A DNA stretch of 64,000 nucleotides, taken from the sequence record KU686213.1; one strand, 5' to 3'. Each line of letters starts with the position of its first letter. Position 1 is the first letter of the stretch. Under the pieces are notes generated by a model that saw only the letters and a program-made list of their open reading frames with translations, was not told where the DNA came from and made no database searches. The position numbers were made by a program, and so were the translations under genes. Positions 12,230 to 27,437 of the stretch are shown piece after piece.

Positions 12230-12231
12230 TC

Positions 12232-12870
12232 ATGGCTGCTAATTGGGAAAAGAGGTCACTACATAGTTTTGGTTCAAACTTTAGGTTGGACATATGTAAT
12301 CCGCAGACTACAACATCAGGTAATCAAATCTATGAGTTGTATGCTGTTACTGATGAAGAAGAGGATGTAAGTCTTATTGGTTTAGGTGAGGATGGTAAAT
12401 TCCACTTATATAATGATAAGACTATTGAGATCGTTGGTGGTCAAAAAGCATCATCAAATGGTATAGATATTCTCATTCAAGGTAAGAATGGTGATGTATG
12501 TATCAATGCCGATAGAAATGGTCGCATCCGTATTCGTGGTAAGGACATTGTATTACAGGCTGATGAGGATGTAGATATTGTTGCTGGTAGAAACATCAAC
12601 TTGAAATCCGGTTCTGGTCGTGTTCTTATTTCAGGGAACACCTTGGAGAAGACTGGATTGAAAGGTAATTTACTTGACCCATCCGCACAATGGGCATTTA
12701 GAGTATTTGAAGGAACAGGTCTCCCAGCAGGTTCATTTGCACAATTAGCGTCACCATTCTCCGGTATTTCTAATTTAGCTGGTGACCTAATCAAAAATCC
12801 CAATTTATTTTCTGGGTTCGTTCAAGGTGCTGTTAGTAACGCTATTGCTTCAGCATCCTCTTTTGTATAG
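12232..12870 (+). CDS. gp5 C-terminal-like beta-helix spike protein
   Basis: Alternating beta repeats (IRIRGKDIVLQADEDVDIVAGRNINLKSG); ATG at 12232 preferred over GTG 12214. Confidence 0.5.
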   Translation: MAANWEKRSLHSFGSNFRLDICNPQTTTSGNQIYELYAVTDEEEDVSLIGLGEDGKFHLYNDKTIEIVGGQKASSNGIDILIQGKNGDVCINADRNGRIRIRGKDIVLQADEDVDIVAGRNINLKSGSGRVLISGNTLEKTGLKGNLLDPSAQWAFRVFEGTGLPAGSFAQLASPFSGISNLAGDLIKNPNLFSGFVQGAVSNAIASASSFV

Positions 12871-12873
12871 TGC

Positions 12874-12880
12874 CTAAATA
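12874..12880 (+). promoter_or_regulatory. Late promoter
   Basis: CTAAATA upstream of first collagen gene. Confidence 0.6.
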
Positions 12881-12910
12881 TAGCAGCACCCGTTTTATTA
12901 TTGTTTAGTA

Positions 12911-15871
12911 ATGTCTATTCAATTTCCAGCAAATCCAACAATTGGTCAAACATTTACAGATCCTGTAACTAATATCACTTACTATTGGAGTGGTAGTTAT
13001 TGGTCTGCTCAAGGTCCCGGAACGGGTATTGGAGCCACAGGCGCTTCAGGTTCCGCAGGGGCTACGGGCGCTGGTGCTACGGGTGCTTCGGGTATTCCTG
13101 GTCCTAGGGGAAAGACTGGATCAACAGGTCCTAAAGGAGATAAGGGAGATAGAGGTTTTATTGGATTGACTGGCGCAACTGGTCCCGATGGATCACCTGG
13201 TGGTGCTACTGGTCCTCAAGGTGAGTTGGGTTCTACTGGTGCTACTGGTACTGTTGGACCTCTAGGTTCTACTGGTGCTACTGGTATTAGGGGTCTTACA
13301 GGTGATCCAGGTGGTGCTACTGGTGCTACTGGTATTGCGGGTCTTACTGGAAATCAGGGTGCTACTGGTATTCAGGGTCCTATTGGTGATCCAGGTGGTG
13401 CTACTGGTGCTACTGGCGTTCAGGGACCACAGGGAGCAACTGGATCTGGTGCTACTGGTGTCCGAGGAGCAACTGGTGAGCAAGGACTAACTGGACCACA
13501 GGGTGATCCTGGTGGTGCTACTGGTGCTACAGGTCCTCAAGGTTTTATTGGCGCTACTGGTATTGGTGCTACTGGAGCCACTGGTATTCAGGGACCACAG
13601 GGAGCTACTGGTGTTCAGGGTCCACAGGGAGATAGTATTACTGGAGCAACTGGTCCTTTCGGTCCTGGCGGACTACCTGGAGCCACTGGATTAACTGGTC
13701 CCACTGGTCCACAGGGTGCTACTGGTGTTGGTGCTAGTGGTGCTACTGGTATTCAGGGTGATCCTGGTGGAGCCACTGGTGCTACTGGTGTTCTTGGTTC
13801 TACTGGAGCAACTGGAATCACTGGAGCTACGGGTGAGTTGGGTGCTACTGGACCACAAGGACAGCCGTCATTGGTTCCTGGACCTGATGGCTCTACGGGT
13901 TCTACTGGTCCTATTGGTCCTGTTGGTGCTACTGGTGTTGGTGCTACTGGTGCTACTGGTATTAATGGTCCTCCTGGTCCAAGAGGGCTTACTGGTCCTA
14001 CAGGTGCTACTGGGGTTGTTGGTCCTTCAGGTGGTATTACAGCTCAATGGGACGCTAATGTATCTGTTCTAAATGCTAACAACGCTGCCCTTATCGCAGA
14101 CTCCACAGGTTCTAATCTAAAAATATTTAAAGTATCAAAATTTGATCAAGGTTTTGGTGATCAAACAGCATTCTTAAGTGGATTGGTGCGGGGAAATACA
14201 ATCACACTAGCTTCTGGTACTGGATCTTATATCTTTGAGGTCAAGGCTAATAGTGGTCTAGTCAATTCTGCTGGCGTTGAATGCTTCACCATCTTGGTTG
14301 AATCAACAGGTGGTAGTGGAGTACTTGATGCAGGTGCAATCACACTAACCAAGACAGTAACCAGCGCAACCTTCGCATTCTCTACAGCATCAATTGCATA
14401 TCCTAGTGCTGATGGTGATTTAACAATTGACTATAACTTTGAGTTCAACGGATATCCAAAGTATGTCGCATTCTCCCCAACAGATGTTTTAGGTGAAGAT
14501 GTATCACAATTCTTCTTTGATCCTTTAGCCAATAGCCCAAACTTCACAGAGTTCTACTTCCAAGCACAAATCAGTGGTTCTATTAACGACTTCAGGTTTA
14601 ATGTGAGGGGTGGTAATTACTATGCAGATATTAACTCTTGGTTATATGTTGGTGAAGTAGAGACTTTATATGAAGTTCCTGTAGGTAGTGCTGATAATAT
14701 CTCTGCTATTTGGAATGTTCAGGTTGCTGCTGTAGCTACGGGTGCTACTGGTCTTCCTGGTAATCCAGGTGGAGCCACTGGTGCTACTGGCGCTCAAGGT
14801 GTTGCAGGTTCTCCTGGTGGAGCCACTGGTGCTACTGGTGTTCAAGGTATTGCTGGTTTAGATGGAGCAACAGGTCCACAAGGTGCTGCTGGTCTTCCTG
14901 GTATTCAAGGTGATCCAGGTGGTGCTACTGGTGCTACTGGATTTACTGGTGCTATTGGAGCTACTGGTATTGATGGGATAGTTGGAACAACTGGAGCCAC
15001 TGGTCCTCAAGGCGATCCTGGTGGTGCTACTGGTGCTACTGGTCTTCAAGGTTCAACTGGTTTAGGTGCTACTGGCGCTACAGGTCCTCAAGGTGATCCT
15101 GGTGGTGCTACTGGTCCTCAAGGTCTACAAGGAAATCCTGGTACAAATGGTATTCCTGGTGATCCTGGTACAAATGGATTGAACGGGTCTACAGGTGCTA
15201 CAGGTCCACAAGGTACATTTGGATTAACGGGTGCTACTGGATTAACTGGTCCCACGGGTCTTGGTGAGCTTGGTGGTACAGGTGCTACTGGTGCTACAGG
15301 TCTTCCTGGTGCTGGCGGTACTCCTGGTTCTGATGGTGAGATTGGAGCTACTGGTCTTCAAGGTACACAAGGTGTGGATGGTGTACAAGGTACTGAAGGA
15401 TTGGTTGGGGCTACTGGTCCTATTGGTCCACAAGGTCCAGCAAGTGGTGCTACAGGTGCTACTGGCTCTATTGGTCCACGGGGTTCTACGGGTGATCAAG
15501 GCGAGCCTGGTCCTCCTGGTCCTTTCGGTGGTCCTGCTGGTCCTCCTGGTCCTCCTGGTCCTGGTGGCGGTCCTACTGGTGCTGATGGCGCTACGGGTGC
15601 TACAGGCTTAACTGGTCCTTCAGGTGAGAAAGGAGATGCTGGTTCAATTGGTGCTCCTGGCTCTACTGGTGTTGAGGGACCCAAAGGTGATGGTGGAGCT
15701 ACTGGTCCACAAGGTATTCAAGGTATTCAGGGAAACAATGGTGGATTGGGAGCTACTGGTGCTACTGGACCCGATGTGAGGGCAGTTGGTATCAACGCAA
15801 TCTTTACTACCGCAGATGGAAAGACTATAACTGTTACTGATGGAATTATTACTAATGTAGTTGACGCCTAA
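12911..15871 (+). CDS. Collagen-like fibre protein 1
   Basis: Two long interrupted Gly-X-Y blocks ([12 protein letters not shown]) around a globular domain; N-terminal FPxNPxxGQ...W motif. Confidence 0.85.
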
Positions 15872-15886
15872 TTTACCTTTTTTATT

Positions 15887-18715
15887 ATGACTTACGAGAA
15901 CAAAAAAATCCCAGCTAACGGTTCTTTACTAGTTACCAGTAATGGTGCCGTCTCATATGCAGGCGCACCAACTGGAGACAAGAACCAAATTGTTACCTTT
16001 GATAAATTAAGGGCTGAACTACAAGCAACTAACTTGGGAGAACTTTTGTCTCTGGCTGGTATTTCAAGTGGTGGTGGTACTGGTGTAGCTTTGACTGTGA
16101 GAGAATCACAAGGGCTCGGCGGTACTGTTGGTAATAGTCTTGCTAATATCAATACTCTTACCTTTGACCAAAATACTGGTTTTAATGTAGAAGAGACTGG
16201 TGAAGATGGTGAGGCATTCATTAGGTTGGGTTCAGCATTCGCACCTTGGTTTGTAGCTGATTCCGAGACATTGAGACCAGAAGGTGAGGAATCAATTGCA
16301 TTCCTAACTGGTCCAGGTATTGCTATTACCACAAAAACTACGCGGACAGGTATTGGTACAACATTATCAAAAGCCATTATCTTTACTGGTACTTCTGCAT
16401 TTGCCCCTTGGCTTGTAGATGGGCAAGATACACTAACTCCAGATGGTCAAGAGCCCATTAAGTTTGTTGGTATAGGTATTACTATCCTCACTGGTGCTAC
16501 GGGTATTGGTAGCACTGAAGCCGAAGCTATTGGTATTGGTAGCACTGATGTAGTCAAAACTATTACATTCATTGGAGAAAAGGGTGCCCCTGGTGAGGGG
16601 GGCGGATCTACTGGTGCTACTGGTGTATTTGGATCTACTGGAGCAACTGGTCCTACGGGAGCTACTGGAAGTGATGGTGCTACTGGACCTATTGGTTCAA
16701 CAGGTGCTACAGGAATACCTGGGGCTGATGGTTCTACGGGTGTGGAGGGTCCCATTGGCGCTACTGGAGCCACGGGTCCTCAAGGTTCCACAGGAGCCAC
16801 TGGACCAATTGGGGCTACTGGATTTAGAGGATTTATTGGGTCTACAGGTGCTACTGGACTACAAGGAACGACTGGACCTATTGGCTCCACTGGTGCTACT
16901 GGCGTATTTGGATCTACTGGGGCAACTGGTCCTGTAGGAGCCACGGGGATAAGTGTAACTGGCTCAACTGGTGCTACTGGACCCCAAGGTTCTACGGGTA
17001 TATTTGGTTCTACTGGTGCTACTGGTGTATTTGGTTCTACTGGGGCAACTGGTCCTTCTGGTCCAACGGGTGCTACTGGTGTATTTGGTGCTACTGGTTC
17101 TACTGGTGTAGCAGGTGCTACGGGTTCTCTTGGCGCTACTGGAGCAACAGGAGTTCTTGGTTCCACTGGCGCTACTGGTATAGATGGATCAACAGGTGCT
17201 ACTGGCTCTCTCGGTGCTACTGGAGCAACAGGTGTTCTTGGATCCACTGGGGCAACAGGTCCTCAAGGTGCTACTGGTTCTCTTGGTGCGACTGGTGCAA
17301 CGGGTGTTCTTGGATCTACAGGAGCTACTGGTTCTCAAGGTGCTACTGGTTCTCTTGGCGCTACTGGACCCATAGGTTCTACAGGAGCTACTGGAATTGG
17401 AGCTACAGGATCCACAGGAGTTCCTGGTGCTACAGGTTCCACAGGACCCATAGGTTCCACAGGAGCTACTGGTATAGGTGCTACGGGAGCCACGGGAGTT
17501 CCTGGTGCTACAGGTGCTACTGGTCTTCTAGGTTCCACAGGAGCTACTGGTATCGGAGCCACTGGTCCTACAGGAGCTACTGGTCCTACTGGTTCTACTG
17601 GTTCTACGGGTGCTGGTACGACAGGCGCTACTGGTGTTGCGGGTGCTACTGGGGCTACTGGAGCTACTGGAATGTTGGGTTCCACAGGAGCCACTGGTAT
17701 TGGAGCTACTGGACCCATTGGATCTACTGGTGCTACTGGTCCTCTTGGAACAACTGGTGCTACAGGTGTAGGTTCTACTGGTGCTACTGGACTTGCGGGA
17801 TCCACTGGAATTGATGGTGCTACTGGTCCTCTTGGGTCCACTGGTGCTACTGGTCCTGTTGGTGCTACTGGTATTCCTGGTCCTCCTGGTCCTGGTGGTG
17901 GAGATCCTGGTCCCCCAGGTCCTGGTGGCGGTGCTACTGGTGCTACAGGTCCCGCAGGAGCTACGGGTATTCAGGGGGCTACTGGTTTAGGTGCTACTGG
18001 TGCTACTGGCGTATTTGATAATACTAGTGATATCAATACTAGTGGGAACATTACTGCTGCTACTATCACTGCTACTGTTAAGTTTGATGGTGATCTAGAA
18101 GGTAATGCTGATACTGCTACGGTATCAACTAACTCTAATATTATTACCGCTACTGGCTCTAACGAGCATAGGGTGATTATCGTTGATGGTGATACAGGAG
18201 ATCTTGGATTGGAGAGTGATAGTAATCTCACATTCAATCCAAATACAAATACTCTCACCGCTGGTAGTTTCGTTGGCGGTGGTGTTATTTCTGGCTTCGT
18301 ACAGAACAGCACTACTACAAGAGTTCAAACTAGTAGTACTAACTGGGCAAGTACTACATTATCTGCCACCATCAATAAAAAAACTGTAGATAGTTCTATT
18401 CTTATTATGGTGAATCAGAATTACTTGATCAGTAACGTTATTGGTAGTTTTAGGATTATGAGGGGGACAACTCCAATTTTCGCTGTTGATGGTGATATTG
18501 GTTTAATTAACAATACAACTGGAAATCCAATTGTTTCAACAACAGCAGTTGCTTCTAGGTGGGCAGCTACCTTTATCGACACAACTCTAACTTCTGGTAA
18601 TATCACATACTCAACAGAGTTTAGAAAGAGTTCTGGCGGTAGTGGAGCAACAGAATACCTTGTTGTTCAAAGTGCGAATATTGAGAGTTTGATTCAGGTG
18701 ATTGAAATCTCATAG
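15887..18715 (+). CDS. Collagen-like fibre protein 2
   Basis: Long (GATGxx)/(GSTGAT) block and a beta-rich C-terminal domain. Confidence 0.85.
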
Positions 18716-18754
18716 GAATATGGTATAATAGATACTATAATATAGTTGTTTATT

Positions 18755-19828
18755 ATGCGATTTCATATTCTGGGTTTGCCCCACACAGTATCCAGTAAAG
18801 AATATGTTGCCTGTGCTTATACCCAAAAGGTAGTAAAGTTCGGCAAAATGATGAAGGAACGTGGTCACGAGATAATTCACTATGGTCACGAAGATAGTGA
18901 TCTAGTATGCGATGAGCACGTCACTGTGACCACTAATGCCGACTTGGAGAAGGCATATGGTTCATATGATTGGAGAAAGAACTTCTTCAAGTTCAATACA
19001 GGCGATCACGCATATCAAACATTTTATAAAAACGGGATTGAAGAAGTTGGAAAACGTAAGCAGAAGAATGACTTTATTCTCCCTTTTTGGGGATCAGGTA
19101 CTCGCCCTATTTGTGATGCTCATCCTGACCTTATCACAGTAGAGCCTGGTATTGGCTACGCAGGAGGTCATTGGGCTAACTGGAAGATCTTTGAGAGCTA
19201 CGCTATTATGCACGCTTATCAAGGTCTTGAATCTGTTGGTACTTGTAAGCAGAGCTGGTATGACGTTGTTATCCCAAACTATTTCGATTTAGAGGACTTT
19301 GAGTATGCGCCAGAGAATAAAGAGGATTATTTTCTATTTTTGGGTCGTGTATATGCTGGTAAAGGTATTGATATTGCCGTCCAAGTAACCGAGAAGATCG
19401 GAGCGAAGCTAGTAGTAGCTGGACAGAACCCAGAGAACAGAACATTCCCCCCACACGTTGAGTTTGTTGGTTATGCCGACGTAGAGACCCGTAAGCGCCT
19501 TATGAGCCGCGCCAAGGCATCCTTTGTAGCTTCCACATACTTGGAGCCATTTGGTGGCGTACAGGTGGAGAACTTGCTCTCAGGCACCCCTACGATCACT
19601 ACTGATTGGGGAGCATTCGTTGAGAACAACCCACACGGACTAACGGGATTCCGTTGCCGCACTTTTGCTGACTTTGTAGATGCCGCTAAAAACATTGATA
19701 GCATTGCTCCTAGCGTATGTCGTACTTATGGCGAGCAGTTCGCCTTAGAGAATGTAGCACCACGATATGAGAAGTTTTTCCAAGATGTTCTCAATGTATA
19801 TACTGGTGAAGGCTGGTATCAACTATGA
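18755..19828 (+). CDS. GT-B (GT4-like) glycosyltransferase
   Basis: FLFLGRV...[33 protein letters not shown] (EX7E); ATG 18755 preferred over TTG 18746. Confidence 0.9.
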
Positions 19829-20727
19829 AGAGAATAGCATTCTTTACATATAATGAATGGGCTTTCGGGTCCATTCATAAAGCATTGATAAAGGAGCTAT
19901 ACAAAACTGGTATTGACTCTAATATCATTGACTGGAATGTCTCTTATAGTAGAGAAGAGTTCAATGCTTTTATGGATACATATGATGTATTTGTTACAGT
20001 ACCAGGAAACGCAGTAACTGCTCTGCTATCCTATGGTGTTCCTTATAATAATATCATTGCTATTGCCCACGGTAGGTATGATATACAATTTGGTTTAGCG
20101 GAATGTAATGACTTTAATGCCTTCCGTGCTTATGGTGGGGTTAGTTTAGATTTAGCTGATTTTTCACATAAGAATGGAATAACCAAGGACTTCTATGTTG
20201 TCCGTAATGGTATTAACTTTGATGAGTTCTATCGTCCAGTAGCAGAACAACTAAATGTTATTGGTTATTCGGGTGTTATTGAAAAGGAGAATCCACACTC
20301 CAATATAAAAGATTGGAAGCGTGGTTATCTAGTCAAAGAAATAGCATCCAAAACAGATACCAAGTTACTTCTACCATCACAGAGGAGTCATCTAGCTATG
20401 GCTGCCTACTATAAGAATGTTGATTGTCTTATGGTATCATCCACAGAACAAGAATCTTGTGGTCTTCCACTATTAGAAGCTGCCGCAGCAGGTAGGCTAC
20501 CCATATCAACTCTCACTGGTATCAATAGAGACTTTGAAGTTCCTACTGGCGTTATACTACCGATGGAAGAAGACCGTTATTTGTTTGCTGGTACAAATGC
20601 TATCAATACACTCAAAGAAAACCCCAAGTTCTTTAAGCAGCTATGTACAAATGCCCAAGATTTTGCTAGAATACATTACGATTGGTCAGTTGTTATAGAC
20701 GGCTGGATTACTCTACTCACACAATAA
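19825..20727 (+). CDS. GT-B glycosyltransferase
   Basis: [25 protein letters not shown] (EX7E-type); start overlaps previous stop. Confidence 0.85.
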
Positions 20728-20731
20728 TATT

Positions 20732-21328
20732 ATGCTTACCGATTTAATACAAGTTGTAGATTGCCTTACACCAGAACAAACTCAAAGGTGTTTGGAATTG
20801 CTGGAAAATTATGAATGGACTCCAACTACCGTATTTGGTATGAGTGGTTGTGAAGTAAATCCTAATATCCGTCTCAATGATAGAGTTTGTTTGAGTGATG
20901 TAGACGAGTGTGCTAAAATTATGCACGAGGGAATGAATGCATCTCTTCTTACATACAAAGATATTGTGGGTGGTATTAATCAGGAGTTCCAAAAGTATCC
21001 TGTCCCAGGCACATATAGAACAAATTGTTATAGGGAATCCATTCAAGTCCTCCGATATACAGAAGGTCAATACTATAAATGGCACTCTGACGAAGCCACT
21101 GATAGGACTATAAGCGAAGCTAATAGAACTATTTCTATGGTTCTATACCTAACAGATGACTTTGAGGGTGGTAGAACCCACTTTATCCACCGCCACTATA
21201 AGCCAAAAGCTGGTCAGGTATTAGTATTCCCATCTAACTGGTGCTTCCCACACGAGTGTGAGGTAATCACCAAAGGAACTAAAATCGCAGCAGTTACTTG
21301 GTATCATTCACATTACAATTTTGACTAA
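20732..21328 (+). CDS. 2OG-Fe(II) oxygenase, prolyl 4-hydroxylase-like
   Basis: YYKWHSD, RTISMVLYL..DFEGGRTHF, PHE, GTKIAAVTW. Confidence 0.88.
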   Translation: MLTDLIQVVDCLTPEQTQRCLELLENYEWTPTTVFGMSGCEVNPNIRLNDRVCLSDVDECAKIMHEGMNASLLTYKDIVGGINQEFQKYPVPGTYRTNCYRESIQVLRYTEGQYYKWHSDEATDRTISEANRTISMVLYLTDDFEGGRTHFIHRHYKPKAGQVLVFPSNWCFPHECEVITKGTKIAAVTWYHSHYNFD

Positions 21329-21519
21329 TGAGTAAAACTACACCCCAGACCGTCCACGAAGCACATCTAGCATCATTCAGTGGACGCTTAAATATGATTG
21401 CTGCCGCAGCACATTGTGGCTTAACATTACGAGAGTTTAAGATGACTTTCCGAGAGTTTTTGAAGTATAATCCACCTTCATATAGCCCAGAAACCACTCT
21501 ACAACTTGATCTATTTTAG
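21328..21519 (+). CDS. Small protein with HTH-like segment ending QLDLF
   Basis: 63 aa, translationally coupled to the oxygenase. Confidence 0.7.
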   Translation: MSKTTPQTVHEAHLASFSGRLNMIAAAAHCGLTLREFKMTFREFLKYNPPSYSPETTLQLDLF

Positions 21520-21523
21520 CCTG

Positions 21524-21530
21524 CTAAATA
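21524..21530 (+). promoter_or_regulatory. Late promoter
   Basis: CTAAATA upstream of the 1958-aa gene. Confidence 0.6.
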
Positions 21531-21560
21531 TAGTAACAGTTTTATTATGGGTACGGAAAA

Positions 21561-24500
21561 TTGCCACTTAATAAGTTAGAAAATTTCATTAAGAACGTTG
21601 ACGGTCGCACTCTGTATGTGAATCCAGCGGATTTGAATGCGACCGACAGTATTACAAACGAAGGCACTTCTCTCACAGAGCCCTTCCGTACTCTTCAAAG
21701 GGCACTCATAGAGTCAGCTCGTTTTTCCTATGTTCAGGGAGATAATAACGATTTAATCGAAAAAACTACGATTATCTTATATCCAGGTGAGCACACTATT
21801 GATAATAGACCTGGCTATGGTATTAAGGTTGATGGTAGTGGTGATGCTATTGCGGTAGCTCCTAATGGTCAGCAAGTTACACCAGCACCAGTATTCAACC
21901 TAGCTTCTGATACAAACTTTGATATTGAGTCCCCAAACAATATTTTATGGCACTTCAACTCCATTTATGGTGGTGTTGTAATTCCTCGTGGTACTTCTAT
22001 CGTAGGTATGGATCTACGTAAGACAAAGATCCGCCCCAAGTATGTACCAAACCCAACAGACCCATCAGTACCATCCTCTGCAATTTTCCGTGTTACTGGT
22101 ACCTGTTACTTCTGGCAGTTCACAATTTTTGATGGTGCTGAAAATGGTCTAGTATTCACTGACCCACAAGATTTCTCTGAAAACAATCAGTGTCGCCCAA
22201 CATTCTCACATAATAAGCTAACCGCATTTGAGTATGCTGATGGTGTAAATCCTGCTATTGCTAATGGATTTGAGCTAACTGACTTGCAGATGTATTATAG
22301 TAAGCTATCAAATGCTTATAATGAAGCATCTGGTCGTCAAATCAAACAGAAGTTCCCTGCACAACCAGAGGGATTTGCTCCAATGCTCCCCGAGTTTGAG
22401 ATTGTGGGTGCATTTGCAACAGATCCTATTCGCATTGCTTCTCTAATTTCTGGTGATGGATTTACCCCAGACGCTGTTATTACAGTAGACACTGTTGTCC
22501 CCAATGATTTAGCCGTTGGAACTCCCATTAAGATCCGTGGAGTAGCTGTATCCGATTATAATATTTCTGCGAAAGTTGCGACAGTCATTAGCCCAACACG
22601 TTTTACATACTTAATCCCATTCGTAAGACCTGAACTTCCAGCACGTCCATCTGTATCCTCTGCAACTGTAACCGTTGAGACTGATACTGTTACTGGTGCA
22701 TCTCCGTACATTTTTAACGTATCGATGCGATCCGTCTGGGGTATCAATGGTATGCATGCTGACGGCAGTAAGGCAACTGGATTCCGTAGCATGGTCGTTG
22801 CACAGTTCACCGCGATCAGCCTTCAAAAAGATGACCGTTCATTCGTTAAGTATAACGAACAGGCACGTAGATATGATGGTATTGATGTTAGTACCACAGT
22901 ACGTGGTGCTGAACTAGCAGCAGGCTCATCCTCCACAAATAGTGCTCGTGTTTATCATCTAGACCCACGAGCAATTTATCGTCCAGGTTGGGATACTACT
23001 CACATTAAGATGAGTAATGATGCTGTTATTCAGATCGTTTCAGTCTTTGCTATTGGATTCAACCAGCACTTCGCAGCACTATCTGGAGCTGACGCATCTG
23101 TCACCAACTCAAACTCAAACTTCGGTCAATTTGCCCTATTATCAGGTGGATTTAAGAATGATGCATTTGAGAAAGACGACCGAGGATTTGTAACACAAAT
23201 TGTTACACCAAATACTGCATACAATCCATCAGAAGATGCTATCTCCAATATTGGTTGGGTTAATATTGACTTTTCGTTGACTAACAGCCAATCATTACCT
23301 GGTCAGTTATATCTACTTGGTTATTCTAATAAAGAGGATATACCACCATACATCAATCAGGGCTTCCGTATTGGTGGAAACTATAATGAGACTTTATATC
23401 AACCACTTAGTGATGAATCACTGGAAAGTGCTTCAATTTGTATGGTTGATAACCTTATTGATGGCAATTCCAATGTTGCTACTGGTACTGATATTGCTCG
23501 CAAAACATATCCAGTAATTGCTGGTCCTGGTCAAGGTCCAACATCAGGCTCCACTCTAACTCTTCCATTCCACGGTCTATTAAATGGAGAAACTATTCGT
23601 ATCTTCTCTGGGACGGGTGATCTACCAGAAAATATCGATGCAGCTACATTATATTACGCAAACGTTGTTGATGCAGAGAACATTCGCATTTCAACCTCCC
23701 AGTCTAATGCTCTAAATGACCTATTTTTGGATATTTACGGCGGCACTGATCTGCGCATTGAATCTCGTGTAAATGATAAGACACCTGGTGATGCGGGTCA
23801 TCCAATCCAGTATGATGATACTATAGGTAATTGGTTTGTTCATACTAATGTAAATAGTGATATCTATCAGTATGTTAAATCAAATCCCACATCTACTGAA
23901 GGTCTTGACTCTGTTACTTTCTACCAGAGAGAGGGTGATAATAGAAGCCTTGACGATAAAATCTATAGACTAAGATATGTTATCCCCAAAGAAACTGTAA
24001 ATGCTAAGCCACCAACCCCAGGATATGTTATTCAGGAGTCTTCTTCTACTGGTGCTAGGGATAATGATGATTTCATCCTCAATGATTTAACATTCACTGA
24101 TTATGAATATGATAGAAACCCAAGATATATTGTTAGCTGTAACTTCATCTCTATCTCATCAGAGGTAGAGGTTCGCAGTGAAATCCCTCACCAATTATTT
24201 GTTGGTGATAAGATCAACATCATTAATGTTACTTCAACAAATAATCCTGACGCAGTAAATGGTAGAGGATATAATGGTGAGTTCTTAGTAACACGTATTA
24301 TAGATGCTAGAACTTTCTATTATAGTTCTACTGATGTTAATGGATTTACTAGAAACTTAATTGGTGAATTGTTTACCAATGATACAAACGATAGAAACAT
24401 CCTACTACCACGTTTTCAGCGTAAGGATAATCAAACCAATACTTTCGTCTATCGTGTAGAGGAAATTTCTCCATTCAGTGAGACGATTAGAGATGGTATC

Positions 24501-27437
24501 TATCATTTGTTCTGTGTTAATGGTTCAAATCAAGTAACCGAGACCTTTACCAATAGATTCTACAATCAGCCCATTGAAGATCTTTATCCTCAATTAGATA
24601 CTGATAATACTAATAACAATGTTGAGTCATCAACAACTTTCGCCAATAGTTCACCACTAGGTAAAGTCGTTATTGATAGCCTACAGTCCTCTATCACTAG
24701 AGAGACTATTGATAAGCTATCAAAGAGTTCAAGTACAAATATAATCAAAACAGTTACTATTGGTGCTTCAGAAACTACATTAGAATTTGAGCGTGAGCAC
24801 AACTTCAGTGGAGTATATGGTTACACTACATTAGCCGGTGGTAGTGGTTATGTTGATGGTACTTACTATAATGTAAGGTTGCTATCTGGTGCTGCCTGGA
24901 AAGGTGCATCTGCCGAGGTTGTTGTTATCTCAGGTCAAGTTAATTCACTAACCATTATGGACCCAGGTTCTGGGTATAGTGGTGGAGAAACATTGAATAT
25001 TGATCCATCTGGCTTGGGTGGTGGCGTAGGCGCAAGTATTACTATCACTTCAGATGATATTGAAAGTTCTGCTGGATTCGTATTACAACTCACTGGTGGT
25101 GGTCTAACAACACCTGACTCATACGCACCTATTGTAACAGTAGATAGCACAACATCAGTATCAATTGCTAATTCTTCTATTGTTTCTGGTATCTCAACTA
25201 CCGGAATGTATGCTCTACCTACTGATAGTGGAACATCTATCGCAGCATATAGTTTTGATAGTACTACTGGAGTATCAACATTCACTGCAGACCCAACAAC
25301 TGGCTTTGGTATGCAGAGAGGTAATAGCTTCGTAGCATTTGACTCTAATGGATATCCATTAGGTAAGTATTACGTGTCTTCTGTTCCATCTCCAAACATT
25401 ATTGAAACTAAAACTAATTCAAATCTAGTAGATGTAGCATTGATTGGTAAGTGTGGTTATGAAGATAACGATGCTAATACTGGTTCTAGTGGAGAAAATA
25501 TTGGTATCCGTGGTACCGCAGCATTTGATTTAGGTGTATTCTACTTAGAAACCAATTCAGGCACTGAAAATGTATTGACTCTATCAGCCAGAGATGGCGG
25601 CGTAACTGGTAAAGTCGCACAGAAACTACCTCTTGGAAGATACCTACAGATTGGCTCTGAAATTATTCGTGTTGCTAGTACTACATTTGGTGGACTAAAC
25701 CTCAATGAAGTAACTGTTATCCGTGGTGCTCTTGGTACTAATATCATCAACCACCCACAGTTCTCTAAACTCAGGGCTATCAATCCTCTAGCGATTGAGC
25801 TACGCAGACCTTCTATTCTCCGTGCATCTGGTCACACTTTTGAGTACCTAGGCTATGGTCCTGGTAACTACTCAACAGCACTACCACAGCTACAAGTAGA
25901 ACAGCTCCCTGATGAAGAAGTATTCTTGGTACAGGCACAGGAACTATCTTGTGGTCAGGTTGTATACACTGGTATGTCCGATAATGGAGACTTCTACATC
26001 GGCAACACCAAGTATTCTGCTACTTCAGGCACACAAACTACATTTGATGTACCCATTCCAACAGTAGCAGGTCAAAATGCTTCCAGTAATAACGTAGTAT
26101 TTGATGAAGTTATAGTCAATCAGAGATTATTCGTTGCTGGCGGTGAGACAAATCAAGTTCTATCACAGTTTGATGGACCTGTTAAGTTTACTCAATCAGT
26201 TAACATAGAAAATACTTTAGGTGTAACTGGTAATAGTTCATTCAATACTGTAGATATTCTCTCACAGGAGAATGCTATTTCTCTAACTGATGGTGGAGCA
26301 CTTACTATTCGTGGTGGGGCATCCGTTGGTAAGGATTTGTATATTGGAGGCACACTATACTCAACTGGTGATTTCTCTACTAATATTGTTTTAGCAGCTG
26401 AGCCAGATTCTCCTATTAGCCTATTTGAGAATCAGAATAATGGTTTGCTTGGTATTGGTAGTCAACCAGGTAAAGTTGTTTTCAACACAACAGTACCTGC
26501 TACTGGTGATGGTGGAGATGACATTGCTGATGCTGATGCTGGTGTTGTTGTTGAGGGTGGTTTAGTTGTAAGGGGCACTCTACTAGCAGGTGAAGTTAAG
26601 GCTAATGGTCTTGGTAAGCCTGGTACCGTTATTATGTGGGGTGGTACTGTTGATAATGTCCCTGAGGGATACTTATTGTGTAATGGTGCAGCATATGATA
26701 GAACCACATACGATAAGTTATTCGCTTCCATTGGGTATGTTCATGGTGGTTCTGGTAATAACTTCAATGTTCCTGACCTAAGAGACAAGTTCATTACTGG
26801 TGCTGGTTCTCAATATAATACTTCTGATGAAGGTGGAAGCAATACTGTTGTTTTAACTGAAGCGGAACTTCCCACGCATACTCACATCATAGACAATACG
26901 GATATATCCCATACACACGCTCTTGATGCGGGGGCAACTGCAAGTGTTGTAAATGATAATACTCCATTATCTGTTAGTGGTTCTACTGATGATGATACAG
27001 GAAAGCATATACACTCTTCTGGTGCTACCAGTGATCCTGGAAATCATACCCATTCTATTACTGATGTACAACATGCACATAGTATGGCAGGCTTTAATCA
27101 AGAGGACAGTGCAGAAAGAAGTGCTGGACTCATTGTCGATGATGATCGAAGACCTAATGAGAATACTGGGTGGGCTACAAGGGGAGCATTCACTGGAATT
27201 ACTGGCACGAATGGAGGTGGGAGTCATACCCATACTATTTCTGTAACTAATCTCAACTCCGAGCATAATCATACATTGACTGCTAGTGGTAATGCTAACC
27301 ATAACCATGATCTTGAGGGAAATACTGCAAGTTCTCTTGGTGATCATGATCATACTGCACAAACCACTGGTGCTGATGTTGCTCACGAGAACCGTCCTCC
27401 ATATTACGCTCTGGTCTATTTGATCCAGTACAAGTGA
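21561..27437 (+). CDS. Large virion structural/tail fibre protein with tail-collar domain
   Basis: C-terminal PGTVIMWGG..VPEGYLLCNG...FNVPDLRDKF collar, nine HxH motifs, AHENRPPYY; TTG start. Confidence 0.85.
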   Translation: MPLNKLENFIKNVDGRTLYVNPADLNATDSITNEGTSLTEPFRTLQRALIESARFSYVQGDNNDLIEKTTIILYPGEHTIDNRPGYGIKVDGSGDAIAVAPNGQQVTPAPVFNLASDTNFDIESPNNILWHFNSIYGGVVIPRGTSIVGMDLRKTKIRPKYVPNPTDPSVPSSAIFRVTGTCYFWQFTIFDGAENGLVFTDPQDFSENNQCRPTFSHNKLTAFEYADGVNPAIANGFELTDLQMYYSKLSNAYNEASGRQIKQKFPAQPEGFAPMLPEFEIVGAFATDPIRIASLISGDGFTPDAVITVDTVVPNDLAVGTPIKIRGVAVSDYNISAKVATVISPTRFTYLIPFVRPELPARPSVSSATVTVETDTVTGASPYIFNVSMRSVWGINGMHADGSKATGFRSMVVAQFTAISLQKDDRSFVKYNEQARRYDGIDVSTTVRGAELAAGSSSTNSARVYHLDPRAIYRPGWDTTHIKMSNDAVIQIVSVFAIGFNQHFAALSGADASVTNSNSNFGQFALLSGGFKNDAFEKDDRGFVTQIVTPNTAYNPSEDAISNIGWVNIDFSLTNSQSLPGQLYLLGYSNKEDIPPYINQGFRIGGNYNETLYQPLSDESLESASICMVDNLIDGNSNVATGTDIARKTYPVIAGPGQGPTSGSTLTLPFHGLLNGETIRIFSGTGDLPENIDAATLYYANVVDAENIRISTSQSNALNDLFLDIYGGTDLRIESRVNDKTPGDAGHPIQYDDTIGNWFVHTNVNSDIYQYVKSNPTSTEGLDSVTFYQREGDNRSLDDKIYRLRYVIPKETVNAKPPTPGYVIQESSSTGARDNDDFILNDLTFTDYEYDRNPRYIVSCNFISISSEVEVRSEIPHQLFVGDKINIINVTSTNNPDAVNGRGYNGEFLVTRIIDARTFYYSSTDVNGFTRNLIGELFTNDTNDRNILLPRFQRKDNQTNTFVYRVEEISPFSETIRDGIYHLFCVNGSNQVTETFTNRFYNQPIEDLYPQLDTDNTNNNVESSTTFANSSPLGKVVIDSLQSSITRETIDKLSKSSSTNIIKTVTIGASETTLEFEREHNFSGVYGYTTLAGGSGYVDGTYYNVRLLSGAAWKGASAEVVVISGQVNSLTIMDPGSGYSGGETLNIDPSGLGGGVGASITITSDDIESSAGFVLQLTGGGLTTPDSYAPIVTVDSTTSVSIANSSIVSGISTTGMYALPTDSGTSIAAYSFDSTTGVSTFTADPTTGFGMQRGNSFVAFDSNGYPLGKYYVSSVPSPNIIETKTNSNLVDVALIGKCGYEDNDANTGSSGENIGIRGTAAFDLGVFYLETNSGTENVLTLSARDGGVTGKVAQKLPLGRYLQIGSEIIRVASTTFGGLNLNEVTVIRGALGTNIINHPQFSKLRAINPLAIELRRPSILRASGHTFEYLGYGPGNYSTALPQLQVEQLPDEEVFLVQAQELSCGQVVYTGMSDNGDFYIGNTKYSATSGTQTTFDVPIPTVAGQNASSNNVVFDEVIVNQRLFVAGGETNQVLSQFDGPVKFTQSVNIENTLGVTGNSSFNTVDILSQENAISLTDGGALTIRGGASVGKDLYIGGTLYSTGDFSTNIVLAAEPDSPISLFENQNNGLLGIGSQPGKVVFNTTVPATGDGGDDIADADAGVVVEGGLVVRGTLLAGEVKANGLGKPGTVIMWGGTVDNVPEGYLLCNGAAYDRTTYDKLFASIGYVHGGSGNNFNVPDLRDKFITGAGSQYNTSDEGGSNTVVLTEAELPTHTHIIDNTDISHTHALDAGATASVVNDNTPLSVSGSTDDDTGKHIHSSGATSDPGNHTHSITDVQHAHSMAGFNQEDSAERSAGLIVDDDRRPNENTGWATRGAFTGITGTNGGGSHTHTISVTNLNSEHNHTLTASGNANHNHDLEGNTASSLGDHDHTAQTTGADVAHENRPPYYALVYLIQYK

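Follow-up and report, generated by a model that had tools for sequence, protein, structure and literature searches.

The DNA analyzed here (the window) is a stretch of 64,000 nucleotides from Synechococcus phage S-CAM7 (KU686213.1), a marine T4-like cyanophage. Five genes lie on its plus strand in the order Col1, Col2, GT1, GT2, and a 2OG-Fe(II) oxygenase, with the baseplate hub upstream and a giant tail-fibre gene downstream (Table 1). The existing database annotation of these genes is limited to hypothetical, glycosyl transferase, and 2OG oxygenase, while the oxygenase is named "putative prolyl 4-hydroxylase" in the record of a sister isolate. The first-pass annotation had described two Gly-X-Y genes followed by two glycosyltransferases and an oxygenase, tightly spaced on one strand; all five ORFs were confirmed at these coordinates, with an intergenic spacing of -4 to +40 nt. 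No further members of these families occur within the 64-kb window.

Table 1. Features of the fibre interval of S-CAM7 (positions in the window)
Feature	Position	Strand	Remarks
Hub gene	10145-12229		With the phrog_3363 protein, upstream anchor of the variable fibre interval
Small conserved protein	12232..12870	+	phrog_3363; part of the upstream anchor
Late-promoter-like motif CTAAATAT	12874..12881	+	37 nt upstream of the Col1 start
Col1, collagen-like fibre protein	12911-15871	+	986 aa; PF01391 E=4e-61; phrog_3420
Col2, collagen-like fibre protein	15887-18715	+	942 aa; PF01391 E=1e-49; phrog_36982
Sigma-70-like promoter match	18702..18729	+	Just upstream of GT1; 11/12 consensus match only, extended -10 TG
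GT1, GT-B/GT4 glycosyltransferase	18755..19828	+	357 aa from the probable ATG 18755; PF00534 52.6 bits (cutoff 26.4)
GT2, second GT-B/GT4-like glycosyltransferase	19825-20727	+	300 aa; start overlaps the GT1 stop; GenBank start 19885
2OG-Fe(II) oxygenase, prolyl-4-hydroxylase type	20732-21328	+	198 aa; PF13640 64.5 bits
Conserved 63-aa ORF	21328..21519	+	Between the oxygenase and giant fibre genes; phrog_1920 E=1e-28
Giant tail-fibre protein	21561..27437	+	1958 aa; annotated tail protein; conserved downstream anchor

The fibre interval is hypervariable, and the number and length of its collagen genes differ among sister isolates. The giant fibre shares 62% identity with its counterpart in ACG-2014f and 46% with that in P-SSM2. 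A small ORF occupies the position of the 63-aa ORF in both of these phages, and this ORF is a syntenic companion of the module. The motif CTAAATAT recurs at 21524-21531, at an equal distance before the giant fibre gene, and in the module region, motifs resembling it precede Col1 and the giant fibre gene only. ATAAATA-related motifs are present 29-37 nt ahead of other structural genes. Because the motif count is not above chance, we infer a late-promoter role for CTAAATAT from its suggestive position only. The canonical T4 late promoter TATAAATA was not enriched and did not occur in the region, and no terminator-like site was found at any gene end of the five-gene set.

Both fibre proteins score far above the PF01391 cutoff of 27.2 bits (Col1, 203 bits; Col2, 166 bits). 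In Col1, Gly-X-Y segments at approximately residues 41-376 and 611-955 flank a non-collagen middle domain, and in Col2, a Gly-X-Y segment (230-702) separates an N-terminal domain (1-229) from a C-terminal domain. There are 216 triplets in Col1 and 150 in Col2, with the longest unbroken run comprising 49. Thr at the Y position is the dominant feature (74 of 216 triplets in Col1 and 88 of 150 in Col2). Pro is a minority at Y (28 and 6, respectively) and occurs 42 times at X in Col1, and Lys is found at Y four times in Col1 and once in Col2. The Pro content of the S-CAM7 collagens is only moderate, at 0.27 per triplet. GPP runs had been claimed for both fibres; GPP is present in both, but "runs" overstates four and two isolated triplets with at most two consecutive. 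All of these triplets fall within the final quarter of the collagen segment in question. The repeat length of Col2 varies among S-CAM7 isolates. The position of the genes suggests that Col1 and Col2 reside in the virion.

Enzymes encoded downstream of the fibre genes

The ORF of GT1 opens at TTG 18746, and the GenBank start is 18776. Its best solved relative is a cyanobacterial alpha-1,2-glucosyltransferase (7fg9, E=8e-21, donor domain), and both Glu residues of the EX7E motif, E267 and E275, are invariant in the homologue alignment. The nearest solved relatives of GT1 act on small molecules, which counts against a collagen acceptor. Homologues of GT1 form more than 5000 clusters, and JGI names them "glycosyltransferase involved in cell wall biosynthesis". 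The proposed family spans T4-like cyanophages, lambda-like prophages, and spore-forming bacteria.

GT2 scored 24.5 bits on PF00534, just under the cutoff of 26.4, and relatives of GT2 scored above it. A sequence search of GT2 against solved structures gave nothing significant. Its structural model (pLDDT 91.7) most closely matched BshA, PimA, and MshA, which are GT-B enzymes of the GT4 type, in Foldseek (E~1e-11, TM 0.65-0.73). In its EX7E motif, E210 is nearly invariant and E218 is invariant. GT2 lies directly downstream of GT1 in 18 of 78 GT1 loci on diverse viral contigs. An NCBIfam search with GT1, GT2, and the oxygenase returned far-sub-threshold matches only.

The oxygenase contains a His-x-Asp…His iron triad and a Lys (H118, D120, H174, and K184), all of which are invariant across 33 orthologs. 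The P4H-type Lys quoted in the first-pass annotation is K184 and proved to be one of these residues. It lies 10 residues after the distal His and is aligned with the Lys of the B. anthracis P4H. A Lys binding the C5 carboxylate of 2OG is a hallmark of collagen P4Hs. The best solved relatives by sequence are the P4Hs of B. anthracis, PBCV-1, and Chlamydomonas, and also P3H1; the match to the B. anthracis P4H is distant (E=2e-5, 27 bits). The best fold match of the model (pLDDT 91.8) is the EF-Tu prolyl hydroxylase PPHD, followed among the top folds by PHD2, CrP4H, and vCPH, with P4H matches at E~1e-12. No TET/JBP match was found by Pfam or fold comparison. Likewise, Pfam and solved-structure searches gave no PLOD-type match, and the hydroxylase and glycosyltransferases are separate genes. 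Many cyanophage 2OG oxygenases share the P4H-like fold, and S-CAM7 itself encodes such a paralog. A 2OG oxygenase from the virion proteome of S-SCSM2R (PMC12801897) was considered; however, it cannot be equated with the S-CAM7 ortholog.

Enzymes and collagen classes across loci

Among non-redundant collagen-bearing viral loci, Thr or Ser accounted for at least 45% of Y positions in 23/23 loci with GT1 versus 1/39 without it (Fisher 4e-16), and the median Thr fraction at Y of collagen ORFs was 0.55 in GT1 loci (n=29) versus 0.15 in GT1-less fibre loci (n=39; p=1e-9); these p-values overstate independence because the two samples were differently anchored, the giant fibre gene being the anchor for 80 loci, and because the loci are phylogenetically related. 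In an oxygenase-anchored marine sample, the Thr class was confined to GT1-bearing loci of the S-CAM7/ACG-2014f type. A collagen ORF was present in 13 of 46 loci of GT1 relatives in cellular genomes, and all 13 were of the Gly-X-Thr/Ser type with at most one Pro at Y.

The same arrangement recurs in unrelated contexts. S-CBWM1, an unrelated cyanophage (Aokuangvirus), encodes a 328-aa Gly-X-Thr fibre directly followed by a 33%-identical GT1, with no oxygenase. A lambda-like Kaistia prophage carries a J-like fibre, a Gly-X-Thr collagen, small ORFs, GT1, and an endolysin. In a Clostridia chromosome (locus L275), SpoIIE is followed by a collagen-like gene, which precedes GT1 and then a permease. 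The collagens adjoining GT1 belong to at least 12 families according to their non-collagen domains. Across three independent samples and in these unrelated contexts, the GT1 family showed a specific coupling to Gly-X-Thr/Ser collagen-like genes. A collagen gene was found within 8 kb in 9 of 17 GT1 loci with full flanks (approximately half). In a Gammaproteobacteria MAG of 3.3 Mb, a GT1 with 80% identity lies among other glycosyltransferases and has no collagen gene as a neighbour, and this locus speaks against an obligate link.

Collagen genes were present in 8/10 giant-fibre-anchored loci with the oxygenase versus 9/33 without it (p=0.007; p=0.001 when restricted to loci with at least 5 kb of upstream sequence), and all 13 loci with Pro-rich collagens had the oxygenase, whereas 0/32 loci without it were Pro-rich (p=1e-5); these figures represent few independent events because oxygenase clades track the collagen class. 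In P-SSM2, the oxygenase follows five collagen-like fibre genes, and no glycosyltransferase is present there. Collagens are poor in Pro at 17 oxygenase-positive loci, and orthologs are retained next to Thr/Gln collagens that nearly lack Pro (for example, 242 triplets with one Pro at Y). Nine oxygenase-positive loci have collagens rich in Lys at Y, and among 61 non-redundant oxygenase loci, approximately 12 lack a collagen gene within 8-10 kb upstream. Co-occurrence of the three gene types across cyanophage genomes had been named as a check on the module: GT1 does track Gly-X-Thr/Ser collagens, whereas the oxygenase link is moderate and its clades follow the collagen class.

A proposed fibre module with its own modifying enzymes, and the alternatives

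We propose, with a probability of roughly 0.55, that the five genes constitute a fibre module with its own glycosylating and hydroxylating enzymes. What we observed directly is the gene order, the folds, the catalytic residues, and, by comparison among loci, the coupling between enzyme and repeat chemistry; from these, we infer the acceptor, donor sugar, order of action, residence in the virion, and any benefit. The first-pass annotation had suggested that the phage hydroxylates and glycosylates its own fibres. Its glycosylation half is now well supported by the coupling of GT1 to Gly-X-Thr/Ser collagens. The hydroxylation half is moderately supported by the P4H fold, the collagen-P4H-type Lys, and the statistical link to collagen genes and Pro-rich collagens, and is weakened by orthologs that occur beside Pro-free collagens or without collagen genes.

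The proposed module occupies a hypervariable stretch flanked by the baseplate hub and giant tail-fibre genes. Col1 and Col2 would form putative trimeric collagen-like fibres in which Y is mostly Thr. Judging from the comparative sequences, GT1 probably acts on collagen Thr; as a retaining-type GT4 enzyme with an EX7E motif, it would take a sugar from a nucleotide sugar of the host and attach it to the Thr (or Ser) hydroxyl group of Gly-X-Thr triplets in the cytoplasm of the infected cell. There is an even chance that GT2, the frequent downstream partner of GT1, extends the resulting glycan by lengthening or diversifying it. More tentatively, and at odds that fall short of even, the P4H-like oxygenase may use O2, Fe(II), and 2-oxoglutarate to hydroxylate fibre Pro, the most plausible targets being X-Pro-Gly sites together with the GPP triplets that cluster toward the C-terminus of each collagen segment. 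Fibres assembled from the modified chains would gain stability or shielding, or would adhere differently.

Only the glycosyltransferases may tailor the fibres, with the oxygenase being one of many cyanophage 2OG-Fe(II) paralogs that has another substrate. This could be the giant tail fibre or a host protein (EF-Tu or a ribosomal protein, for example), or the enzyme could act on Lys instead of Pro. We consider this alternative unlikely, although it is the likeliest of those examined. The location of the oxygenase would then reflect the role of the fibre interval as an accessory-gene hot spot. Its gene usually lies directly upstream of the giant fibre gene (approximately 250-320 nt, with a small ORF between), one clade is located 54 nt upstream of that gene with no collagen nearby, and the gene is kept beside Pro-free collagens as well as the Lys-rich ones. 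GT1 occurs without the oxygenase in 75/80 GT1-anchored viral loci, as it does in S-CBWM1, and the top folds, PPHD (EF-Tu) and PHD2, together with the many paralogs sharing the fold, are consistent with another substrate. However, the C5 site for 2OG is Lys and not Arg, as in collagen-type P4Hs, the nearest solved sequences are P4Hs and P3H1, the oxygenase is present at every Pro-rich collagen locus, and 33 loci have the giant fibre gene without it.

The remaining alternatives dispense with the fibres as acceptors. During infection, GT1 and GT2 may remodel a glycan of the host surface, such as the LPS O-chain, which could serve to block superinfection, and their adjacency to the fibres may be coincidental. 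Glycosyltransferases of cyano- and pelagimyophages that lie in the hypervariable region are, as a rule, read in this way (PMC7029224, PMC12801897); GT4 enzymes are usually taken as LPS or cell-wall enzymes, and the JGI name, the cellular homologue among other glycosyltransferases, and the sigma-70-like promoter ahead of GT1 agree with this reading. We nevertheless regard it as improbable. It does not explain the constant Gly-X-Thr/Ser class of the neighbouring collagens, the two-gene collagen and glycosyltransferase cassette in the Clostridia chromosome, or the placement of GT1 between tail fibre and lysis genes in the lambda-like prophage; furthermore, the window has no genes for nucleotide sugars or polysaccharide export alongside the pair. 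Accessory and repeat-rich fibre genes may also simply accumulate in a recombination-prone interval. Its hypervariability and the presence of collagen genes in 17/43 giant-fibre-anchored loci (at least 3 kb upstream), whatever the enzymes present, fit such chance adjacency, which is nonetheless very improbable considering that enzyme-to-repeat matching recurs in T4-like, lambda-like, and cellular contexts with GT1 identity down to 33%. TET/JBP-type 2OG oxygenases make hydroxylated bases in some phages, and the three enzymes may hypermodify the phage DNA by base oxidation and then glycosylation. Phage glycosyltransferases whose fold resembles 7fg9 have been proposed as DNA glycosyltransferases in a DNA-glycosylation cluster of Rhizobium phage RL38J1 (PMC13326640). 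We rejected this as the main reading because the oxygenase is a PF13640 (P4H-like) protein that is not TET/JBP-like and because covariation with the collagen class would be unexplained; moreover, no thymidylate-synthase-like hydroxylase or base-modification genes adjoin the cassette in the window, and GT1 also occurs beside collagen-like surface-protein genes in bacterial chromosomes. We consider DNA hypermodification scarcely credible.

Returning to the fibre module, we speculate, at slightly less than even odds, that GT1 represents a large, previously unrecognised GT-B O-glycosyltransferase family for collagen-like proteins, and that phage collagens fall into X/Y classes (Thr, Pro, Lys, and Gln), some with a cognate enzyme, forming a modular "fibre modification code" with effects on fibre stability and the recognition of hosts. 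Tail fibres set the host range of phages among cyanobacteria, and cyanomyoviruses help control marine primary producers. If the present interpretation is correct, the receptor-binding surface is under-described by sequence alone, and glycosyltransferases in the hypervariable regions of cyano- and pelagiphages, which are usually read as modifiers of host LPS, need to be re-read. Thr in Gly-X-Thr would become a testable acceptor for a very large GT4 subfamily, and virus-encoded collagen modification would extend from giant viruses to bacteriophages. The chemistry of the Y position and the neighbouring enzyme would together provide a sequence-only predictor of modification, and the code would apply to the most abundant phages in the ocean.

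Comparison with known systems

Collagen-like tail fibres of phages were reportedly described by Smith et al. in 1998. Gly-X-Y proteins in the tail-fibre region of T4-like cyanophages were noted in 2005 (P-SSM2 orf23/orf28; PMC1079782). In our literature search, we found no earlier link of phage collagen-like fibres to dedicated modifying enzymes or to Y-chemistry classes, and no title or abstract on these genes among the literature on S-CAM7 and S-CBWM1. By analogy, the closest precedents of the module appear to be BclA3/SgtA, BclA, Mimivirus L230, and mycobacteriophage virion glycosylation. Mycobacteriophage glycosyltransferases decorate their own virion proteins (Freeman et al. 2023, as cited in PMC12619734 and PMC12801897). 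As far as these citing papers describe them, the targets are the C-termini of capsid and tail-tube subunits in phages of actinobacterial hosts, with no hydroxylase, whereas those in S-CAM7 would be collagen-like fibres.

Giant viruses encode collagen-like proteins together with modifying 2OG hydroxylases and glycosyltransferases, such as the Mimivirus lysyl hydroxylase/glucosyltransferase L230, along with R699, and the PBCV-1 prolyl 4-hydroxylase vCPH (PMC9614988, PMC9546862, PMC5802723), and vCPH is among both the fold and sequence matches of the S-CAM7 oxygenase. However, these are viruses of eukaryotes with other glycosyltransferase families, and their enzymes act via the glycosylation of hydroxy-Lys, whereas the sugar in S-CAM7 would be placed directly on Thr. 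The Mimivirus route of Lys hydroxylation is not applicable because Col1 and Col2 have a total of only five Lys at Y.

The analogy to Bacillus BclA was apt. In the exosporium glycoprotein BclA of B. anthracis, the collagen-like region carries rhamnose/anthrose oligosaccharide side chains (PMC6222408; Daubenspeck 2004, as cited in PMC9614988). Among solved structures, the P4H of this species is closest in sequence to the S-CAM7 oxygenase, though it is a distant relative, and it is not known to act on BclA. Furthermore, the Bacillus BclA and P4H genes do not form one cassette, and the glycan and glycosyltransferases differ from those of S-CAM7.

Clostridioides difficile SgtA, which is encoded beside bclA3, transfers O-GlcNAc onto Thr of GPT collagen repeats in vitro (PMC7157674). 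As in S-CAM7, the gene for a Gly-X-Thr collagen-like surface protein adjoins a glycosyltransferase gene, and a two-gene arrangement of this kind is also seen at the Clostridia locus. SgtA contains TPR repeats and belongs to the GT-A enzymes (PMC7157674), whereas GT1 and GT2 are GT-B/GT4 enzymes; because these folds differ, the likeness is an analogy and not homology. BclA3/SgtA belongs to the spore exosporium and has no hydroxylase partner, whereas the S-CAM7 genes combine a phage fibre with an oxygenase.

Organization of the locus

The window corresponds to the first 64 kb of Synechococcus phage S-CAM7 isolate 0910SB42 (KU686213.1; Kyanoviridae, Mazuvirus), with 100% identity and unchanged coordinates. 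The five ORFs described at this locus in the first-pass annotation exist, and are co-directional and almost abutting: two collagen-like fibre genes (Col1 and Col2), two glycosyltransferase genes (GT1 and GT2), and a gene for a prolyl 4-hydroxylase-like 2OG-Fe(II) oxygenase. They are preceded by a baseplate hub gene and a conserved small protein and followed by a conserved 63-aa ORF and a giant tail-fibre gene of 1958 aa. No other collagen gene, GT1/GT2 family member, or oxygenase of the same type was found within the 64-kb window. The genes of the module have already been deposited, with generic annotation.

Positions of features at the locus and in comparison records (window coordinates unless a comparison locus is named)
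Feature	Position	Orientation	Remarks
Col1	12911-15871	co-directional	986 aa; Pfam Collagen, E=4e-61
Col2	15887-18715	co-directional	942 aa; Pfam Collagen, E=1e-49
GT1	18755-19828 (from ATG); ORF opens 18746; GenBank start 18776	co-directional	PF00534
GT2	19825-20727; GenBank start 19885	co-directional	start overlaps GT1 stop
2OG-Fe(II) oxygenase	20732-21328	co-directional	PF13640
Variable collagen genes of S-CAM7 isolates	12911-18715; L002 4912-9549; L003 7891-9798		L002 and L003, sister isolates
CTAAATAT motif	12874-12881 and 21524-21531		37 nt before Col1 and giant fibre starts
CTAAATAT/ATAAATA motifs	12874-12881, 21524-21531, 1741, 8794, 27442		29-37 nt 5' of structural-gene starts
Second 2OG oxygenase of ACG-2014f	L004 22197-22769
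Clostridia MAG cassette	L275 6783-9125
Kaistia nematophila K-TC2 prophage tail end	L281 1252-10159

The ATG at 18755 is the probable start of GT1, given the conserved residues at the N-terminus and the 357-aa length of homologs. The GenBank starts of GT1 and GT2 in KU686213 appear to be too far downstream because homolog-invariant residues lie upstream of both; that of GT2 cuts off invariant residues. The longer forms of both genes are used in the sister record MT586120.

The families initially assigned to the three enzymes were correct, as indicated by profile matches, invariant residues, and models of GT2 and the oxygenase. GT1 clearly belongs to PF00534 (GT4, GT-B), and its EX7E residues are invariant. 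Among solved structures, its best relative is 7fg9, an alpha-1,2-glucosyltransferase of Thermosynechococcus that acts on sucrose; since the match spans the donor-binding half only, it does not indicate the acceptor of GT1. The Pfam score of GT2 was slightly below the cutoff and those of its relatives exceeded it, and the GT2 model (pLDDT 91.7) matched BshA, PimA, MshA, and 7fg9. In the oxygenase, H118, D120, H174, and K184 were invariant across 33 orthologs. Its nearest solved relatives by sequence were the prolyl 4-hydroxylases of B. anthracis, PBCV-1, and Chlamydomonas, and P3H1, while the top matches of its model (pLDDT 91.8) were all protein prolyl hydroxylases (PPHD, PHD2, CrP4H, and vCPH).

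The CTAAATAT/ATAAATA motifs may represent the late-promoter -10 element of S-CAM7; canonical TATAAATA was rare in the window. From Col1 to the small ORF, neither a CTAAATAT/ATAAATA motif nor a terminator-like site at any gene end was found, and a sigma-70-like match (11/12, at 18702) precedes GT1. Since the motif counts were not above chance, the co-transcription of the enzyme genes with the fibre genes is at most plausible.

Collagen-like repeats and the GT1 family

Col1 and Col2 contain 216 and 150 Gly-X-Y triplets, respectively. Thr dominates the Y position (74 in Col1 and 88 in Col2), and Pro is a minority there (28 and 6). The GPP runs previously noted in both fibres amount to just 4 and 2 triplets, each located within the final quarter of the collagen segment to which it belongs. 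The two proteins contain 34 X-Pro-Gly sites, and their six GPP triplets cluster toward the C-terminal end of each collagen segment. These features would be compatible with a role in stabilisation or nucleation, which we offer as a suggestion only. The collagen genes are a hypervariable part of S-CAM7: isolates share about 99% identity elsewhere, and the flanking enzymes stay at 99%. In one sister isolate, a single 1545-aa collagen gene replaces Col1 and Col2; in another, Col2 has 635 aa and 47 triplets, versus 942 aa and 150 triplets here. The GC content was 0.47-0.51 across the collagen genes (12000-18000) and about 0.40 elsewhere, with a strongly negative AT skew, which is attributed to the abundance of Gly, Ala, Thr, and Pro codons in the repeats and not to a foreign origin.

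In the fibre intervals of marine cyanomyoviruses (L007-L086 and L167-L243), the residues at X and Y divide the collagens into discrete classes. One is rich in Thr, a second in Gln (as much as about 85% of Y residues), a third in Lys (about 40-55% of Y residues), and a fourth in Pro at X as well as at Y. No obvious cognate enzyme was found for the Gln and Lys classes in these intervals.

The gene order in ACG-2014f (Atlauavirus) is hub, small protein, one collagen gene, two small ORFs, GT1, oxygenase, small ORF, and giant fibre, without GT2. GT1 is 86% identical between this phage and S-CAM7, versus 51-65% for the hub, small protein, oxygenase (58%), and giant fibre. In P-SSM2 (Salacisavirus), five collagen-like fibre genes, the ORFs of which were noted by its authors in 2005 (PMC1079782), are followed by the oxygenase (42%), a small ORF, and the giant fibre, without a glycosyltransferase. 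In the unrelated myovirus S-CBWM1, a gene for a 328-aa collagen-like fibre, in which 31 of the 67 triplets are Gly-X-Thr, directly precedes GT1 (33% identical), without an oxygenase. The enzymes are, therefore, separable, and each still lies beside collagen genes.

The GT1 family is very large (>5000 clusters) and unusually conserved. Among the best 80 of 470 confirmed viral IMG/VR stretches (L087-L166), GT1 identity was 72-97% and GC 0.28-0.51. A collagen-like ORF was present within 8 kb of GT1 in 32 of these 80 loci, and in 9/17 when only non-redundant loci with full flanks were counted. It was the immediate 5' neighbour of GT1 in 12/76 viral loci and never occupied the +1 or +2 position, which held GT2 (at +1 in 18 loci), a methyltransferase, or a small ORF; further neighbours were tail-fibre and baseplate proteins. 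In many GT1 homologs, a methyltransferase domain (PF13489, PF08241, or PF05050) is fused to the C-terminus, or a separate methyltransferase gene follows, which hints at methylated sugars.

The discriminating comparison was repeat chemistry. The median fraction of triplets with Thr at Y was 0.55 for collagen ORFs in GT1 loci (n=29) versus 0.15 in GT1-less fibre loci (n=39; Mann-Whitney p=1e-9). Among non-redundant loci, Thr/Ser made up at least 45% of Y in 23/23 GT1 loci versus 1/39 GT1-less loci (Fisher 4e-16). Within a single sampling frame, that of the oxygenase-anchored marine loci, Thr-class collagens were confined to GT1-bearing loci of the S-CAM7/ACG-2014f type. When grouped by their non-collagen domains, the GT1-adjacent collagens form at least 12 families and, thus, are not one co-inherited gene.

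The pairing extends to cellular genomes. A third sample, drawn from GTDB genomes, contained 46 GT1 relatives (33-80% identity) spanning Alphaproteobacteria, Actinomycetota, Acidobacteriota, Clostridia, Saccharibacteria, and others. A collagen-like ORF was located near GT1 in 13 of these loci, often abutting it, and all 13 were Gly-X-Thr/Ser collagens in which Pro was essentially absent from Y. Annotation was carried out for two of them. In cultured Kaistia nematophila K-TC2, the tail end of a lambda-like prophage encodes a J-like central fibre followed by a Gly-X-Thr collagen-like fibre of 677 aa; three small ORFs separate the latter from a GT1 homolog (35% identical), and an endolysin gene comes last. 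In the chromosome of a Clostridia MAG, a Gly-X-Thr collagen-like gene and GT1 form a two-gene cassette between spoIIE and a sulfate permease gene.

A Gammaproteobacteria MAG (L244/L245, 3.3-Mb contig) carries an 80%-identical GT1 in a low-GC island. Its neighbours are a GT25 gene and a gene for a 696-aa protein whose C-terminus resembles a beta-1,4-GT, and no collagen gene was found at this locus. It looks like a recent phage-bacterium transfer in a polysaccharide context.

The oxygenase and alternative readings

Among deduplicated, giant-fibre-anchored loci with at least 3 kb of upstream sequence, collagen genes were present in 8/10 loci with an oxygenase ortholog versus 9/33 without (Fisher p=0.007); with at least 5 kb, the values were 6/6 versus 7/28 (p=0.001). 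Across all samples, 13/13 Pro-rich collagen loci had the ortholog and 0/32 ortholog-less loci were Pro-rich (p=1e-5). The ortholog was also present in nine Lys-class loci, which raises the question of Lys hydroxylation. The link between the ortholog and (Pro-rich) collagens is weakened by three observations. The oxygenase clades follow the collagen class (Pro, Thr/Gln, Lys, Thr, or none), and independent oxygenase-collagen events are, therefore, few. The ortholog is also kept beside collagens with almost no Pro, and in one clade, which has no collagen within 10 kb, it lies 54 nt upstream of the giant fibre gene. Moreover, the fold is common among cyanophage 2OG oxygenases, and S-CAM7 itself has a paralog. 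ACG-2014f encodes a second, 23%-identical 2OG oxygenase a few kb downstream, adjoining a DNA methyltransferase, which illustrates the abundance of paralogs with this fold in cyanophages.

The proposal that the phage hydroxylates and glycosylates its own virion fibres thus fared unevenly in the co-occurrence check: GT1 and Thr/Ser collagens were paired across samples, whereas the oxygenase link was weaker. We consider glycosylation to be probable and hydroxylation possible. The most serious alternative is that the glycosyltransferases tailor the fibres and the oxygenase acts on another substrate. The remodelling of the host surface (LPS) by the glycosyltransferases is the usual reading in the literature (PMC7029224, PMC12801897), but leaves the matching of repeat classes and the cellular and prophage cassettes unexplained. 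DNA hypermodification by the glycosyltransferase/oxygenase set, considered in light of PMC13326640, is unlikely. Based on the distribution of the genes, the GT1 family most likely adds a sugar to Thr/Ser residues that occupy Y in collagen-like proteins, and GT2, often its partner, would perform a second glycosylation step.

Comparison with known systems

Collagen-like phage fibres are already known, as are virus-encoded collagen hydroxylases and glycosyltransferases in giant viruses (PMC9614988, PMC9546862) and Thr-glycosylated bacterial collagen-like proteins (BclA and BclA3/SgtA). Phage-encoded virion glycosylation has been reported for mycobacteriophages. We found no earlier report that couples a GT-B/GT4 family to Gly-X-Thr collagen-like proteins in both phages and bacteria, or that sorts cyanophage collagens into chemical classes accompanied by particular enzymes. 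In C. difficile, the glycosyltransferase encoded beside bclA3 (SgtA) adds O-GlcNAc to Thr of GPT collagen repeats (PMC7157674). SgtA is a GT-A enzyme, unlike the GT-B enzyme GT1, and, thus, is not a GT1 homolog. The layout of bclA3/sgtA matches that of the Clostridia cassette, which looks like a BclA-type exosporium glycoprotein system using a GT-B enzyme instead of the GT-A enzyme SgtA.
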